Origin: Macrostomum hystrix
Lineage: Eukaryota; Animalia; Platyhelminthes
Direction of reading: 5' to 3'
DNA length: 64,000 bases
Assembly: GCA_950097015.1 (NCBI GenBank)
Contig: CATNEN010000007.1
Coordinates: 6,076,001-6,140,000, forward strand
The notes below the pieces were generated by a model. It did not search any database. It was not told the DNA's origin and worked only from the letters and a program-made list of their open reading frames with translations. Below, in pieces: positions 42,043 through 56,500 of this stretch. The translations under genes and the position numbers were made by a program. How positions within the stretch are numbered: position 1 is the stretch's first letter; each line of letters starts with the position of its first letter.

Positions 42043-42468
42043 TGTTGGTCAAGTTTGTCTGGGCTAAATGCTTCTGGTTCTTGCATTTCAGGTCAACCAT
42101 CAACCATAGTTATTTTTGCAGATTTCACTACAAACCTTTTCTCTATTATAAGGGCCCTATGTCTATGTGATGTTTCAGTTGAATAACTTGCCACTTTAAC
42201 GTTTTTAATGTAAAAACGTTTCAAAGCTAAAAGTGAACCAAAACAGTTCAGTAAAAAAAGAAATGGTTTCTGTTAACTTAGCAAAAGTTTAGCTATGGCT
42301 TATTAAAAGTTAACAAAGAGGCAAATTCTTATTAACATTTTCTAACAGATCAAAGTTTATCAATTAACCAATGCCCAACACTGCTTGTAATTTTTAGGCC
42401 TATTCACAAACTGTATTTACTTAGGCCTATTGTCCTTAACAAGCATTTTTTATATATACCTGGATATA

Positions 42469-43009
42469 CGAGGGGTGTTGCAAAATTTTCCGGACTAATG
42501 CTAATCCTGGTGACAATTCATGTTTGATTTGGCTGAAAATTGATGTCTATGGTATTCAGCCATAGAAAAGACTTTTCCAAAAATTTTATGCAGCTTAGTC
42601 AACCACAGCATACATGAGGGCCAAAATAGGTTGCAACCCTTTGAAGCTGTTGACATGATTTTTCACAAACCAAAAGTGAGCAAAAATGAGTCGACCAAAG
42701 AATCCATCAGAGTTCTGGTCTAAGGAAAGCCAGCGCCACTTTATCATGGCATGCCAACGATAGGGCAAAACAGCCAATTTCTGATTTTCACTGATTTCCA
42801 CCTCTTTGGCCCAATGAAGATACCAATGTGGGGCAAGATCTTCACAACACGCAAGGTCATCAAAGCAGCTAACAAGTCTCTACGTCAGTTCGATGCCAGC
42901 TTCTGGGGGTCTGGCTTCGACAAGCTGATTGAGCGCTATCAAAAATGCAATCAGACTAAAATTATCACCATGACAAGCATTAGTCCAGAAACTTTTGCAA
43001 CACCCCTCG
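42469..43009 (+). mobile_element. Internally deleted mariner (Tc1/mariner) non-autonomous element, 541 bp
   Basis: TIRs CGAGGGGTGTTGCAAAATTTTCCGGACTAATGCT / AGCATTAGTCCAGAAACTTTTGCAACACCCCTCG, TA on both sides (42467-68, 43010-11). Remnant DFHLFGPMK...FWGSGFDKLIERYQKC matches the mariner transposase C-terminus. Confidence 0.92.
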
Positions 43010-43497
43010 TACTTAATTAAGTAAAAATATGTTTATATGGAATAAATAAGTCCATATTTATTAAACTTTTGCAATAAGTATAATTGTTTAATAAATTTAA
43101 AATGATAGATTTGTGGAGCCATATATAAGGTTTTTACTTTATGTGTTCTGGTTGTTTGGTCAACCAGAATACTTAATTCGATAATTTCTGAAGCTTTTGC
43201 AGTTACTTATTACATTTGCTAGTTTGCTGTATAAATGCAACAATTATAATATATCTTTGTATATGGCCAAGCAAAAATATAATGTTTTAGTTTCTTTAAA
43301 TACTGTTTCTGCTACTTGATATACCATCTTAGAAGACCTGTGCATTAAATTTAATTATTTAAATGTAAGTTTTTATAAGGAAATTTTTGTTTAAAATAAA
43401 CAGTACTTTTAGTTGCTCTTCACACTATTTTTTTGTAAGCAATGTTTTCTAAACTTGAGTCTTTAAACTTCATTGAAGCTGCAGCTGCTCTGGCACA

Positions 43498-47039: not shown

Positions 47040-47495
47040 CTCAGCCTATCTCACAGGGAATCTCACCCTATCTCACAGGGAATCTCACCCTATGTCACAG
47101 GGAATCTGACCCTTTCTCACAGGGAATCTCACCCTATCTCACAGGGAATCTCACCCTGTGTAATATAGATTCACAGGGAATCTCACCCTTTGTAATATAG
47201 GCTCACTGGGAATCTTACCCTCAATATAGACACACAGCGAATCTCACCCTTTGTAATATAGGCTCACTGGGAATCTTACCCTCAATATAGACACACAGGG
47301 AATCTCACCCTGTGTAATATATATTCACAGGGAATCTCACCCTTTGTAATATAGACTCACTGGGAATCTCACACTCAGTAATATAGGCTCACTGGGAATC
47401 TTACCCTCAATATAGACACACAGGGAATCTCACCCTCAGTAATATAGACTCACAGGGAATCTCACCCTTAGTAATATAGACCCACTGGGAATCTC
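47040..47495. repeat. Minisatellite built on CACAGGGAATCTCACCCT, abutting the first ASK1 acceptor
   Basis: Variable-length units ending about 14 nt before tttcag|47510. Confidence 0.9.
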
Positions 47496-47509
47496 TTGTC
47501 AAATTTCAG

Positions 47510-50500
47510 GCCTCGAGCTTGCACAGTCAGCAGGCCGCCTCCAGCGCCGGCGCCGCCGCGGTCGCCGCAGCCGCAGCAGCTTCAGCGCCCGGTTCAAATG
47601 CCACCCGACTGCGCGTCGTTTGTGTCGTCGACCAGGCTACGCCCCAAGCAACCGGCGCCACGGCGGCGCCGCGACAGAAGGCCTTTGCGGATGTTGAGCG
47701 CGCCTGCAAGAGGTGAGCACACTTTGAGAAGGATCTAGTACCTGATATTAGCGGGTTTAACTTAATTCTTGCTTTTAAAGTGGGTCGTATTCTCGTGCTG
47801 CAGATATTTAGGTTGCTAAATTCTAAATATGCAAATATGTAATAGGAACTGAATATCAATGGAATTTAATAACTTACTTTAATTTGTTCTGTTTGAAGCA
47901 TTTGTCCAGCCAGGATTGCGCACTCATCTTCATGCAAATTTTACTAGTATACGTTGTAAGTCGTTATTATTAGGCGTATTGCAGATAATTAAGCATTAAT
48001 TTAAATTCCTTGACAAATAATATAAAAGGTAGGGTACAATAATTATATTCATGTTGTTCGAGTGTCTGTTTTAGAATTCCCAATAGGCTGTTACTAGTAT
48101 TTTGCTAAAAGTGCATTTTGTTTTGCACTATTCGCGCATTTAGTTTGTCTGCTTTAAACAGCTTTCTATCCCAGTTGCTTTCGGAAAATTTATTGTATTA
48201 TTTAATGACTGGTACCAAACATCAAAGAATCTACGAGTAAATAGCCTCTGAAAAACTGACACATTTAAGCATTCCCCTTAATACATACAGGTGTAGACAC
48301 CCTCTAACAAACCCACAGGTGTACACACCCTCTAACAAACCCACAGGTGTACACACCCTCTAACAAACCCACAGGTGTACACACCCTCTAACAAACCCAC
48401 AGGTGTACACACCCTCTAACAAACCCACAGGTGTAAACACCCTCTAACAAACCCACAGGTGTACACACCCTCTAACAAACCCACAGGTGTAAACACCCTC
48501 TAACAAACCCACAGGTGTAAACACCCTCTAACAAACCCACAGGTGTAAACACCCTCTAACAAACCCACAGGTGTAAACACCCTCTAACAAACCCACAGGT
48601 GTACACACCCTCTAACAAACCCACAGGTGTACACACCCTCTAACAAACCCACAGGTGTACACACCCTCTAACAAACCCACAGGTGTAAACACCCTCTAAC
48701 AAACCCACAGGTGTAAACACCCTCTAACAAACCCACAGGTGTAAACACCCTCTAACAAACCCACAGGTGTACACACCCTCTAACAAACCCACAGGTGTAA
48801 ACACCCTCTAACAAACCCACAGGTGTAAACACCCTCTAACAAACCCACAGGTGTACACACCCTCTAACAAACCCACAGGTGTACACACCCTCTAACAAAC
48901 CCACAGGTGTACACACCCTCTAACAAACCCACAGGTGTAAACACCCTCTAACAAACCCACAGGTGTACACACCCTCTAACAAACCCACAGGTGTAAACAC
49001 CCTCTAACAAACCCACAGGTGTAAACACCCTCTAACAAACCCACAGGTGTACACACCCTCTAACAAACCCACAGGTGTACACACCCTCTAACAAACCCAC
49101 AGGTGTACACACCCTCTAACAAACCCACAGGTGTACACACCCTCTAACAAACACACAGGTGTAAACACCCTCTAACAAACCCACAGGTGTAAACACCCTC
49201 TAACAAACCCACAGGTGTAAACACCCTCTAACAAACCCACAGGTGTAAACACCCTCTAACAAACCCACAGGTGTACACACCCTCTAACAAACCCACAGGT
49301 GTACACACCCTCTAACAAACCCACAGGTGTAAACACCCTCTAACAAACCCACAGGTGTAAACACCCTCTAACAAACCCACAGGTGTAAACACCCTCTAAC
49401 AAACCCACAGGTGTAAACAGTCTCTTAGAAAGCCAAATATCAAAGAAATGTTTTTCAGCATTATATTTTTTAAAGGCCTTTCTAATTCTTAAAAAATAGA
49501 GTATTGTTTAGCCCTTGCTTTCAATTTTCGTAGATTTTTAATCAACAAATTATTTTCTTTTTAAGTTAGTTTGAGAATGACATAATAAATGCAGTATTGA
49601 ATGCAGCACTCCGTACTCTATAGCAACAAGTCATTCCATGGCATTCAATTTCGCAGTGTTGGCCTAACCTGCATCAGCTTTGCTCACATTATCAACGATG
49701 TTGATAGCGCGGCTGAGCTGTTCTACAGCGCGCACGCTGTTATCGTCATGCTGTCGGATCTGGTAAAAATTCCCTCCGTGTTTGTTGGAGATGCCGATTG
49801 AGAAATTGCTACTGCCATTGACGCTGGCTAGGTTCATTGGAACCTGATTCTGGGTTTGCTTTGATTTCCTAGACAAGGCATTTTGAAGCGTGTCTTTCAT
49901 GGTGGGTTTCGGGTTTTTGGAGTTTAGGTGTGAGACTTTGAGGATTTACTGTTTAGTAGGGGTGAAATTTTAAGCCTTCTTTTTCAGGATGAGATTTTGA
50001 GATTATGAGCTGTACTCTGTGGAGGTTTTAGGGAGTTTTTTCTTAGGAGGGGTGAGATTTTGAGCCGTTTTTAGGGGTGAGATTTTAAGCCGTTTTTAGG
50101 GGTCAGTTACCCAGCAGTTTTTAGGGATGAGATTCCCAGCCATTTTTAGGGGTGAGATTCCCAGCAGTTTTTAGGGGTGAGATTTCCAGCAGTTTTTAGG
50201 GGTGAGATTCCCAGCAGTTTTTAGGGGTGAGATTTCCAGCAGTTTTTAGGGGTGAGATTCCCAGCAGTTTTTAGGGGTGAGATTCCCAGCAGTTTTTGGG
50301 GGTGAGATTCCCAGCCGTTTTCAGGGGTGAGATTTTGAGCCGATTTCTAGGGGTGATTTTGAGCCGATTTCTAGGGGTGAGATTTTGAGCCGTTTTTAGG
50401 GGTGAGATTTTGAGCCGTTTTTAGGGGTAAGATTCCCAGCCGTTTTTTGGGGTGAGATTCCCAGCCGTTTTTGGGGGTGAGATTCCCAGCCGTTTTTGGG

Positions 50501-53500
50501 GGTGAGATTCCCAGCCGTTTTTGGGGGTGAGATTCCCAGCCGTTTTGTTGGGGTGAGATTTTGATCAATTCTCTCTGTGGGTGTGATTTTAAAGTTTCTT
50601 TGCTTAGGAGAGATGAAATTTAGTTTAATCTTAAAAGACTTGGATGAGGAATCTTAGTCTAACTTTTGGGACTTGAAAACAGCAGATGTAAGACTTGTGT
50701 TCATGGTTGACATTTTTTACTGGTCAATAAATTTCAGACAGGTAATCTATTAAAAACGTGTTTTTCTTTATCGGATAAATTTTTTGCAATCTCACTGATT
50801 CTGCCTGCTAGATTTAAGTCTGAAACAGCGCTTTGCCGGCATGTGTAAATATTTTTAAGTCTCTTTGACCCCCTTTTACCGCGCCCTGTTGTTGTTCTCT
50901 ATATTTTTATTAGTCGTTGATTATTTTTTCAGCTTTTTTTTTGTTTTATTTTACCACAGAAAGTGTTTTGCGTTTTTCGATTTAGTCAGTAAAATACTAG
51001 CATTTTTTAAATCCTTTCTATATGGCTTTTGCAGTAGTAATGAATATTTGTGCAAGTCCTGGCTGGACAGGCATGCGTGAATGCACCGCTTGCAGTATTC
51101 AAAATAAGCGCATTTAGCGGGCTTGGAAAAATGATCCACCCCTGGGGAAAAGACGACAGCTGGCTGTATTGACAGGAAAGGAATAAGAGAGAAGAGAGAT
51201 GAGATACGGTAGAGATGAGACAGGAGAGAGTTGAGATACGATAGAGATGAGACAGGAGAGAGTTGAGATACGGTAGAGATTAGACAGGAGAGAGTTGAGA
51301 TACGGTAGAGATTAGACAGGAGAGAGTTGAGATACGGTAGAGATGAGACAGGAGAGATTTGAGATACGGTAGAGATGAGACAGGAGAGAGTTGAGATACG
51401 ATAGAGATGAGACAGGAGAGAGTTGAGATACGATAGAAATGAGACAGGATTGAGTTGAGATACGGTAGAGATGAGACAGGAGAGAGTTGAGATACGGTAG
51501 AGATGAGACAGGAGAGAGTTGAGATACGATAGAGATGAGACAGGAGAGAGTTGAGATACGATAGAAATGAGACAGGATTGAGTTGAGATACGGTAGAGAT
51601 GAGACAGGAGAGAGTTGAGATACGATAGAGATGAGACAGGAGAGAGTTGAGATACGATAGAGATGAGACAGGAGAGAGTTGAGATACGATAGAGATGAGA
51701 CAGGAGAGAGTTGAGATACGATAGAAATAAGACAGGATTGAGTTGAGATACGATAGAAATGAGACAGGAGAGAGTTGAGATACGATAGAGATGAGACAGG
51801 AGAGAGTTGAAATACGATAGAGATGAGACAGGAGAGAGTTGAGATACGATAGAAATGAGACAGGATTGAGTTGAGATACGGTAGAGATGAGACAGGAGAG
51901 AGTTGAGATACGGTAGAGATGAGACAGGAGAGAGTTGAGATACGATAGAGATGAGACAGGAGAGAGTTGAGATACGATAGAAATGAGACAGGAGAGAGTT
52001 GAGATACGGTAGAGATGAGACAGGAGAGAGTTGAGATACGGTAGAGATGAGACAGGAGAGATTTGAGATACGGTAGAGATGAGACAGGAGAGAGTTGAGA
52101 TACGATAGAGATGAGACAGGAGAGAGTTGAGATACGATAGAAATGAGACAGGATTGAGTTGAGATACGGTAGAGATGAGACAGGAGAGAGTTGAGATACG
52201 GTAGAGATGAGACAGGAGAGAGTTGAGATACGATAGAGATGAGACAGGAGAGAGTTGAGATACGATAGAAATGAGACAGGATTGAGTTGAGATACGGTAG
52301 AGATGAGACAGGAGAGAGTTGAGATACGATAGAGATGAGACAGGAGAGAGTTGAGATACGATAGAGATGAGACAGGAGAGAGTTGAGATACGATAGAGAT
52401 GAGACAGGAGAGAGTTGAGATACGATAGAAATAAGACAGGATTGAGTTGAGATACGATAGAAATGAGACAGGAGAGAGTTGAGATACGGTAGAGATGAGA
52501 CAGGAGAGAGTTGAAATACGATAGAGATGAGACAGGAGAGAGTTGAGATACGATAGAAATGAGACAGGATTGAGTTGAGATACGGTAGAGATGAGACAGG
52601 AGAGAGTTGAGATACGGTAGAGATGAGACAGGAGAGAGTTGAGATACGATAGAGATGAGACAGGAGAGAGTTGAGATACGATAGAAATGAGACAGGAGAG
52701 AGTTGAGATACGGTAGAGATGAGACAGGAGAGAGTTGAGATACGATAGAGATGAGACAGGAGAGAGTTGAGATACGATAGAGATGAGACAGGATTGAGTT
52801 GAGATACGGTAGAGAAGAGACAGGAGAGAGTTGAGATACGGTAGAGATGAGACAGGAGAGAGTTGAGATACGATAGAGATGAGACAGGAGAGAGTTGAGA
52901 TACGGTAGAGATGAGACAGGAGAGAGTTGAGATACGGTAGAGATGAGACAGGAGAGAGTTGAGATACGGTAGAGATGAGACAGGAGAGAGTTGAGATACG
53001 GTAGAGAGTTATTGGAGTTAGTCAATCCACGCCAGAGAATAACCAGTGCCCTTGTTTATTAACTAAATAATATATCGTTTCTATCCTAAAACTCACTAAA
53101 AATTAACTATGAGTGCTACTCGGTTTTCAGTAGCTAGTCTCGGATACGGCAACCAAATATTGATCATATGGTCCTAATTTGTATATATTTAGTACCTTGA
53201 TGAAAATTTCAGGTTTGATTTCAATTGATTGATGTTTTAAAAAACTAACACAGGCTAGATGTTGAGCTGCACAAGGTGCTATTTACTCACCTGGACTATG
53301 GCACAACGACTGCTTTGCACGAGTTTTACAACTCCGAAGTGGCCATCACGGAGATGTCCGCCAAGGTTTGTCATCCTTGTTGTCTCCCAGAGTTTGTACG
53401 GCCGGCTGTTCTGCTAATTAACTAATTGTTTTATTTCTTTAAACTAATCTTTTTGAGGTGCTTTTTTCGTTTCTTTTCATGTGCATTTGAATCGAAGTTA

Positions 53501-56500
53501 GTGCGCATTATATACTACTAACCGAACTACTGAGGGTTCAAATCCCAGTTAAGGTGAAAATAGTTTGTATCCTTGAAAAAAAGACAGTTGATTTCCCTTG
53601 GCTTTAGCTGTAAAATTGGCTCTACTCAGCATCAGCTGTTCTTGTCCATGGACTGACTAGCTGTACACAGCCTTTAGATGCGTACATAGCTGCGGCTGAG
53701 CCGCTGTCTGTACTGTACATCTGGCCCCATACTGGGTATTGTACCAACGCTTTTATAATATTTCCTATGAGGATTCGAACTTTAGACCTTCGGTCGCGAT
53801 AAGATTATTCATAACACAAATTTAGTATTCATTTATATACTTGTGATATAAGAATATCTATATTAATATGGTGAACGATACGATTATAAATCGTAATTCA
53901 TGTTTCCATCTTTTCTAATCGATATTTTGAGACACCTCAGACTACCTTTAGATTCTGATTGCGAGCTTTATAGGCGGTAAGTGAGCCCCCCCTGCAATCC
54001 GACTGTTTTGGATGGCGGCACTGGCGCGGCCGGGAGAGGCACTTTGGAGTGGCATGCAAATTCATGCAAATCTCGGCCAGCCTGCATCCCGCAGCTACTC
54101 ATCATCTACCCAGCCCCCCCACCCGGCTTGGCCGACACTCCAACGGATCTCAGAAGGGGAGCCTTGAACCAGCCCCGGATAATGTATGGAGCACTGCCAC
54201 TGCGCGTGTGTGTGCCGGCCTTCACATTTTCTTTATCCTGCTCTTCGGCGCTTGCTGCTGCTGCTGCTGCTGCTGCTGCTTCTTTGCATTGCCCAGCCTA
54301 ATGGGTGAAATTGGCCCTCCATCGTTTGCCTTTTCCCCTTTTTACCCGGCTCCCTATCCCACTCCCCACTCTTCCCAATCCCAATCTGAGCCATTGCGCA
54401 CTTCTTCCCAGTTTTGAGTTGCCGCTCATATCTCAGCTCAAGTTGGGAAAATTCTGTCTGTTATTATTACTTGTTACTCTTCGTGTACGCGACTCGAAAT
54501 TCATCTATGCCCGCGTGCACTTTTATTGCAAACGAAATCCCATCTTTGGAATGATTTGCGCAATTTATTTTGAAAGAGTAAACACTTCTCCGATTATGCT
54601 ATTGTTAACAGTCAGTCTATGCGTGAACACTATTTCCTTGCGTGCACACTCATTAGTCTACTTATTCATTTTTTAGAATGCTTCTCTCATCATGAAACTT
54701 TCGTTCATGTTATACTCCAAATATACTTTAATAGTAATCTGTCCACTGTTCTCATAAGTATTATTCATAGCAGCTCAATCCTGTCTCATACCAGGTGCAA
54801 CAGTACTCGATCCTCTATCACCTGGGCGTTCGGGAGAATCTCGGCATGCGAGACAACATCATCCTTGTGCACGACTTAAATAAGGATGAGACTGACTCAC
54901 TGAGGGTGAGCACTGAGCCCTCCCGAATCCAACTAGCTGCTCTCCCACTGCCCCGAATCCAACTAGCTGCTCTCCCACTGCCCCGAATCCAACTAGCTGC
55001 TCTCCCACTGCCCTGAATCCAACTGGCTGCTCTCCCACTGCCCCGAATCCAACTGGCTGCTCTCCCACTGCCCCGAATCCAACTAGCTGCTCTCCCACTG
55101 CCCCGAATCCAACTGGCTGCTCTCCCACTGCCCCGAATCCAACTAGCTGCTCTCCCACTGCCCCGAATCCAACTGGCTGCTCTCCCACTGCCCCGAATCC
55201 AACTGGCTGCTCTCCCACTGCCCCGAATCAAACTAGCTGCTCTCCCACTGCCCCGAATCCAACTAGCTGCTCTCCCACTGCCCCGAATCCAACTAGCTGC
55301 TCTCCCACTGCCCCGAATCCAACTGGCTGCTCTCCCACTGCCCCGAATCCAACTGGCTGCTCTCCCACTGCCCCGAATCCAACTGGCTGCTCTCCCACTG
55401 CCCCGAATCCAACTAGCTGCTCTCCCACTGCCCCGAATCCAACTAGCTGCTCTCCCACTGCCCCGAATCCCGCAGAACTCGCTGTCACCTTCCTACCGGC
55501 TGTTTCCGTACCTGGTGGACGAGAGCACAGGCCGCTGCGTGGTGCCGGACTCGGCCTGTCACAAGCTGCTGCTTGCCAACTGTCACGGCGGCCACGATCA
55601 CAGTCCGGACACGCTGCTGGTGTCTAAACTCAAACGCGCCCTAAGAGAAGTTGAATCGACTTCCAAGGCTCAACTAAAGGCCAAATTCTTAGACGACCTG
55701 CAGAAGGCGCGCAACGAATACAAGGGCGACAATTTGAAAGACTTCCTACGCCGGATGCGGTCCCGACTGGACGATCCCGACCTGATCTCGCCGGACATCA
55801 TTCACAACATGCTGCTGAGCTATCGCAAGGCACAGGACTACTCGGCCATGGTTGGCCTAGTTGAGGAGCTGAAAACTTTGCCTCACGCCAAGAACCTAGT
55901 GGACATTGTCGGCATTCAGTACCTGTACGCGTTCGCGCTCAACCGGCGCAACCGGCCGGGCGATCGCAAGGAGGCTCTCGACGTTATCCTGCGCGCTGTG
56001 CAGCGCTGCGACAAGCCCGTGCCAGACATGCTCAGCCTAGTTGGCCGCATCTACAAGGACATGTTCACGGACTCCGACTACACTGACACTGAGAGCCTGG
56101 CCCACGCCACTGAGTGGTATCGAAAAGGTTTCGATGTGAGTTCGACTCATCTCTTCTGTCACTCTCTGTCCACAATTCAGCCCCAACCTTTCCCATTCTG
56201 TTTCTCCCCTCTCTCCCCTGCTGCTCTTCTGTCTTTCTCCCCTCTCTCCCCTGCTGCTCTTCTGTCTTTCTCCCCTCTCTCCCCTGCTGCTCTTCTGCCT
56301 TTCTCCCCTCTCTCCCCTGCTGCTCTTCTGTCTTTCTCCCCCTCTCCCCTGCTCCTCGTATCTCTTTCCTCCCTTCTCACCTATTCATCTATCCTCTCTT
56401 TCAATTATCTCTCCCATTTCTCATCTCTATAACCATCCTTATCCACCCTTGTCTCCAGGTGCAGCCGAACGAGTATTCCGGCATCAACCTGGCCACCCTG

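Follow-up and report, generated by a model that had tools for sequence, protein, structure and literature searches.

In this article we describe two alternative exons of a stress-kinase gene, together with a long-range RNA pairing beside them, in a 64-kb stretch of the genome of the flatworm Macrostomum hystrix (contig CATNEN010000007.1, positions 6,076,001 to 6,140,000 of the forward strand), referred to below as the window, in the numbering of which all coordinates are given unless another contig is named. The plus strand of the window between 47.5 and 57.5 kb is the coding region of an ASK-family MAP3K (ASK1/MAP3K5-like). Exon 2 occurs twice in tandem, as the homologous copies 2a and 2b, which are spliced either/or, and a pair of complementary intronic segments, arm U in intron 1 and arm C in the intron between the two copies, brackets exon 2a only. 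Based on the sequence and on folding models we tentatively favour, at a little under an even chance, the explanation that this one long-range stem biases the choice toward the canonical exon 2b and that the reading frame enforces the exclusivity. The locus is a one-stem candidate and not a two-way switch, no second competing stem being present above background.

An ASK1-like gene with two versions of exon 2

The translations of exons 4 and 5 matched the Pfam domains MAP3K_TRAF_bd PF13281 (2.6e-68), TPR-S and ASK_PH, with PF20308 and PF19039 (3.5e-20) among the matches. The best PDB relatives of the gene product are the human MAP3K5/ASK1 structures 8qgy and 5ulm, and among database proteins the nearest, at 91% identity, is a gene model of Macrostomum lignano (UniRef A0A1I8JIM8). 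A TRAF-binding/TPR region followed by an ASK PH domain, and an N-terminal region that can be aligned to ASK1, place the protein in the ASK (MAP3K5/6/15) family, and it is on these three regions that the assignment rests.

All exons discussed here lie on the plus strand, and GT-AG borders were found at all introns of the region of exons 1 to 3; the frames were read one exon at a time, not from a joined spliced model. Exon 1 (47510-47712), whose frame and donor (AG/GTGAGC, GT at 47713-47714) were read from the sequence, ends in phase 2, that is, with two codon bases, and its 5' boundary is placed provisionally at the AG of 47508-47509. Exon 2a (49657-49762; AG 49655-49656, GT 49763-49764) is the divergent copy of 106 nt, and exon 2b (53254-53365) is the canonical ASK1-like version of 112 nt, which aligns to the human ASK1 chain 8qgy_A; both were recognized by their translation, and both have a length of 3n+1. 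Exon 3 (54795-54905; AG 54793-54794, GT 54906-54907), supported by the sequence and by RNA contigs, has 111 nt and is in phase 0. The alternative exon swaps approximately 36 residues of the N-terminal regulatory domain, and we take the matching region of human ASK1 to be part of its thioredoxin-binding portion.

The splicing of the two copies was followed in the contigs of four RNA assemblies on 53008-54921, the longest segment that holds two of the exons and is free of long tandem arrays. The GT..AG joint from 53365 to 54795, which connects exon 2b with exon 3, occurred in all four runs, and so did the joint between exons 1 and 2b, since the loose end before 2b is the last 30 nt of exon 1 (47681-47710). 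Additionally, a 165-nt contig was present in runs X1 and X3, in which 30 nt on exon 3 are preceded by 135 letters ending in the 30-nt 3' end of exon 2a; thus 2a was spliced straight to exon 3 and 2b was skipped, the identification covering the 30 letters next to exon 3 out of the 135. Accordingly the 2a-3 form is represented in two of the four runs and the 2b form in all of them, and no 2a-2b joint was found in the RNA contigs over this segment. In the contig of run X2 there are 226 nt upstream of exon 2b, as against the 203 nt of exon 1 counted from the AG at 47508-47509; the approximately 23 extra letters at the 5' end would be consistent with a spliced leader or with an additional exon farther upstream.

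The either/or use is matched by the coding logic of the locus. When exon 2b is read after 2a, a TGA appears at its codon 4, and when exon 3 is read straight after exon 1, a stop follows after 27 codons. Since both copies are of 3n+1 length, transcripts with both or with neither of them carry an early stop and are presumably removed. The original prediction for this locus, made from the letters of the window, had treated 2a and 2b as alternatives between which splicing is switched, and in so far as the two are homologous, mutually exclusive exons it is borne out, both copies being spliced in the RNA contigs; the strings it quoted were likewise all located at the coordinates it had given.

The M. 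lignano model A0A1I8JIM8 holds both exons in the same order, with 32 of 35 residues of 2a and 29 of 30 residues of the modelled part of 2b identical, therefore both copies are under constraint. In alignments with ASK1 of other animals 2b scored 60-82 and 2a 30-36, and it is for its higher scores that 2b looks like the canonical ASK1 exon. In residues 79-144 of the M. lignano model 2a and a truncated 2b are joined in frame through an internal AG of 2b; this tandem stretch is probably a mis-annotation of the mutually exclusive pair. A second ASK-family gene of M. hystrix was recognized on contig 30 (625562-625822 of that contig; 57% identical in the TRAF-binding region) with a single exon 2, the start of which is 2a-like (LGLTC) and the remainder 2b-like. 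No match was obtained when metagenomes were scanned with a degenerate exon 2b pattern.

A single long-range stem around exon 2a

Arm U (47898-47933, plus strand) begins 185 nt downstream of the exon 1 donor and arm C (51040-51076, plus strand) is situated 1.29 kb past exon 2a and 2.17 kb ahead of exon 2b. The core of U (47903-47915) is the exact reverse complement of the core of C (51057-51069) over 13 bp; beyond it, after a 1-nt bulge, 47916-47922 pair with 51049-51055 with one G-U, and with the flanking pairs, which reach 47898-47933 and 51040-51076, the helix has approximately 27 bp overall. Its energy as computed by RNAduplex was -41.0 kcal/mol for the segments named in the original prediction and -42.5 kcal/mol for the best 40-nt windows. 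Windows of this size were used because RNAduplex applied to whole introns yields one meaningless global duplex. A crude base-pair alignment score had given p ~0.06 for the same stem (18 of 300 shuffles) and was replaced by nearest-neighbour energies, since it over-rewards long A-U/G-U runs.

No other pairing of unique sequence in intron 1 with unique sequence in the 2a-2b intron is as strong as this stem. When the two introns were dinucleotide-shuffled 100 times, the optimum had a mean of -26.5 kcal/mol (standard deviation 2.65, extreme -36.1) and in no case matched U-C; similarly, when C was set against shuffled upstream introns, -41 kcal/mol was reached in none of 510 trials. An intronic element near a variant exon is thus complementary to a second intronic element more strongly than expected by chance, and the upstream duplex as originally predicted, with its 13 perfect pairs and their extensions, withstands the comparison with shuffled sequence. 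Within the pre-mRNA the best partner of U is C (-41.4 kcal/mol), the next best one reaches -23.9 kcal/mol, which is within the shuffle range, and no other partner above background was found for U or for C.

Both arms with their flanks are single copy in the genome (searched as the assembly of 220 Mb in 42 contigs), and the possibility that they are fragments of a dispersed repeat, on which the prediction would have failed, is removed by this result. Arm U is the top 30-mer of intron 1 in G+C content (0.57, the mean being 0.31) and arm C ties for the top G+C 30-mer of the A+T-rich middle intron. An origin of the arms as terminal inverted repeats of a transposon or of a dispersed repeat was considered and rejected: they match only themselves, the 13-mer core is near chance frequency (8 occurrences in 220 Mb, approximately 6.6 expected), and no target-site duplication is visible. 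A model in which one arm arose by duplication (PMC6071210) was put to the test by comparing the flanks of 2a and 2b, which have no residual intronic homology; even the two exons are without a DNA-level match. An Rfam scan of 47400-55600 matched no family.

Inverted pairs of comparable strength were ranked across the window after correction for composition. Eight pairs reached z <= -5.9, among which U-C (z = -5.9) is the eighth. For six of the seven stronger pairs the tested element belongs to a dispersed or tandem repeat family, and the remaining one (pair 225/627) was not itself searched; the families include a miniature inverted-repeat transposable element (MITE)-like element, a family with hundreds of candidate copies, inverted local arrays and a 53-mer array family. 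U-C is the only strong inverted pair of the window shown to have single-copy arms. The MITE-like element (42467-43011) has 19-bp perfect terminal inverted repeats approximately 510 nt apart and at least 40 related copies genome-wide, many of them as inverted pairs approximately 730 nt apart.

The loop of the stem and the adjoining intron contain three minisatellites on the plus strand, which were delimited by Tandem Repeats Finder: a 28-nt unit in 40 copies (48287-49419), situated inside the loop upstream of 2a, a 25-nt unit in 20 copies (50048-50560), and a purine-rich 32-nt unit in 57 copies (51186-53007) belonging to a family dispersed genome-wide. Together they amount to approximately 3.47 kb, in agreement with the 3.5 kb originally estimated. 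The 25-nt array is the reverse complement of another minisatellite, 47138-47495, composed of GGGAATCTCACCC-type units and lying directly before exon 1; should this stretch be transcribed as part of an outron, many copies of the arrays at 47138-47495 and 50048-50560 could pair across exons 1 and 2a.

In a two-piece cofold (±100 nt) the pair probability of the U-C core was approximately 1.0. When the nascent RNA 47700-51185, i.e. the RNA transcribed through C and before the 32-mer array, was folded without constraints, U-C was part of the minimum-energy structure with core probabilities of 0.96-1.0, and it was also contained in the minimum-energy fold of a 7.2 kb segment in which the arrays were held unpaired.

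Weighing of the alternatives

According to the original prediction C could pair either with U, looping out 2a, or with segment D downstream of exon 2b (54055-54086, plus strand), looping out 2b, and the two duplexes would exclude each other through a shared GGCTGG core. The pairs between C and D can indeed be drawn as described (energies of -27.8 to -29.9 kcal/mol), but 38% of the shuffled downstream introns supplied C with a partner at least as good. Real windows at 54009 (-34.4 kcal/mol), 54193 (-32.4) and 53337, the latter inside exon 2b (-30.9), pair with C better than D does, so at least three of them surpass it, and the strongest of all pairs that join the middle intron to the downstream one (-31.4 kcal/mol) equals the shuffle mean (-30.8). 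D falls into a G+C-rich island (53960-54440), where energies are therefore generally lowered, and in all three full-length folds it is paired locally, with 54091-54193 or, when U-C was enforced, with 54052-54064. Since C-D is at chance level, the bidirectional and mutually exclusive arrangement is not supported; its energy gap to U-C is approximately 12-14 kcal/mol, thus C-D could hardly compete. No two alternative pairings for the same bases were found above background, as the second-best partners of U and of C also stay within the shuffle range. It should be emphasized that the picture of a bidirectional switch rests on a duplex that shuffled sequence reproduced in more than one third of the trials, and we regard it as very improbable. 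The nested helix said to reinforce the upstream fold (48094-48108 with 50986-51000) exists, its energy however, -14.6 kcal/mol, is far weaker than the chance optimum, and the reinforcing role falls away with it: the helix was absent from the 7.2 kb fold with unpaired arrays, and in the other 7.2 kb folds the region was engaged elsewhere. The island 53960-54440 in the 2b-3 intron is single copy, has up to 80% G+C per 30 nt and carries low-depth RNA contigs in all four runs, which could represent unspliced pre-mRNA, a separate transcript or a regulatory element.

A different system of two stems can be composed from the 32-mer array, seven variant units of which (51439-51457, 51567-51585, 51855-51873, 52143-52161, 52271-52289, 52559-52577 and 52783-52801, out of 57 copies) are able to pair with 54771-54789, immediately upstream of the exon 3 acceptor; such a stem would loop out 2b and so oppose U-C. 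With 19 contiguous pairs (18 Watson-Crick and one G-U) it reaches -34 kcal/mol, the 19-mer with at most one mismatch is confined genome-wide to these seven units and 54771-54789, and in the unconstrained full-length fold the array does pair with the region of the exon 3 acceptor. The purine-rich array pairs nearly as well with many pyrimidine-rich sites, however (-32.2 and -31.6 kcal/mol for the variant unit, -34.4 for the consensus unit), and this stem and U-C share no bases, hence they are not mutually exclusive. Furthermore it would mask a polypyrimidine tract that belongs to a constitutive exon, and the dispersal of the array family over the genome makes a recent insertion the likelier origin, so an opposing role for this stem appears quite unlikely to us.

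The most serious alternative, which we hold to be a substantial possibility short of an even chance, is that U-C has no role in splicing. The complementarity would then be a coincidence or the neutral relic of an old local rearrangement, the exon would be chosen by splice-site strength, RNA-binding proteins and transcription kinetics, and the exclusivity would follow from frame incompatibility and the decay of aberrant mRNAs. A number of observations weigh in this direction and against a regulatory stem. The frame safeguard by itself can account for the exclusivity, and the RNA contigs, which show what joints exist, give no isoform ratios. Perfect inverted matches of at least 13 nt at a distance of 300-6000 nt are near chance frequency in the window (9 found, approximately 4-5 expected), and as about 20 independent pairs in it reach -40 kcal/mol, the raw energy alone is unimpressive. 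The distance from C to the 2b acceptor is 2.2 kb and that from U to the 2a acceptor 1.7 kb; both arms are thus more than 1.5 kb away from the regulated acceptors, and neither of them blocks a splice site. From the contig 30 paralogue, with its one exon 2, no structural comparison can be drawn. Finally, U-C is missing when the 7.2 kb segment is folded to minimum energy without constraints, i.e. from the equilibrium fold of the full intron set, and it can be enforced only at a cost of 43.7 kcal/mol, since the purine-rich 32-mer array is engaged with T-rich stretches of the introns across the stem. Global folds of 7.2 kb are unreliable, and proteins, kinetics and pseudoknots are ignored in them; with this reservation the models show a preference for U-C during transcription and no clear preference for it at equilibrium. 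The original statement that the stem survives the insertion of the minisatellites is consequently right for the minimum-energy fold of the nascent RNA, and does not hold for the 7.2 kb equilibrium fold, in which the 32-mer array displaces it.

Against a mere coincidence it can be put forward that the full helix beats all 610 shuffles, that its arms are single copy, unlike the tested elements of the other strong inverted pairs, that both of them are G+C peaks of A+T-rich introns, and that the stem brackets exactly one of two mutually exclusive exons. On these features we base the tentative inference that U-C may form in vivo and affect the choice of exon. In the mechanism proposed for the single regulatory stem, U, 185 nt into intron 1, would pair with C in the 2a-2b intron and loop out 2a, whereby the exon 1 donor would be brought toward 2b and the canonical isoform would be favoured. 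Exon 2a would be used when exon 1 had been joined to it before C was transcribed or paired, and also when the U-C stem was opened or blocked, and the products with both exons or with none would be removed through the reading frame.

Relation to known systems and significance

The closest geometry is that of Drosophila serpent (srp), where a two-exon mutually exclusive cluster (exons 4.1 and 4.2) is subject to bidirectional RNA pairing (Yue et al., RNA 2016, PMC4691838). In stem I of srp a docking element before the first variant pairs with an element of the middle intron, so that the proximal exon is looped out and the distal one is favoured (PMC4691838), and U-C has the same arrangement. In contrast, srp possesses a second, experimentally demonstrated stem between the middle and downstream introns, where in M. 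hystrix none rises above background, and its pairings, which are shared among Drosophila species, have been confirmed by compensatory mutations, whereas U-C is a candidate taken from sequence and folding models.

In human ATE1, exons 7a and 7b are governed by the elements R1 and R4, which compete with each other for R3 (Kalinina et al., NAR 2021, PMC7797038). The two loci are alike in their pair of homologous exons, which are mutually exclusive, and in an element of the middle intron whose pairing spans the first exon. They differ in that R1 and R4 are directly upstream of the exons, overlap the polypyrimidine tracts and resemble each other, while here U is separated from the 2a acceptor by 1.7 kb, C has no partner at the 2b acceptor, and there is no second selector. 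A search for acceptor elements of this kind gave a negative result in the pre-mRNA, the acceptor windows pairing with U only at -22 to -23 kcal/mol and the 2a acceptor region not being among the best 25 partners of C. The locus is not of the ATE1 type, as nothing overlaps the acceptors.

Long-range intronic pairing beside tandem homologous mutually exclusive exons is shared with Dscam1 exon 6 and with 14-3-3xi of arthropods, although these contain one docking site and one selector per variant, which compete for the same bases and are conserved, and here there is one pair. With a homologous exclusive cluster and a non-random pair, and with competition lacking, the M. hystrix gene can be regarded as a candidate member of the docking/selector class. 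The safeguard by the reading frame recalls the frame-incompatible exons IIIb and IIIc of FGFR2, policed by nonsense-mediated decay according to the citation in PMC7797038: a transcript that includes both exons, or none, goes out of frame and meets an early stop. This mechanism enforces exclusivity, however it does not choose the exon, and decay is presumed in the present case.

Control of mutually exclusive exons by RNA structure has been described chiefly for arthropods and for a small number of vertebrate genes, and we found no description of it for flatworms in the literature. It is a rather doubtful, though testable, proposition that Macrostomum would control an either/or choice of an N-terminal ASK1 exon by a co-transcriptional stem, formed once C has been made and afterwards contested by a purine-rich minisatellite. 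Since both transgenesis and RNA interference are available in Macrostomum lignano, the prediction is open to a direct test. If it were true, RNA structure would guide the splicing of mutually exclusive exons in a spiralian too, beyond the arthropods and vertebrates, and the stress kinase would come in two versions that sense redox state. A validated stem would thus extend the phylogenetic range of this mechanism and would tie it to a well-studied stress kinase.

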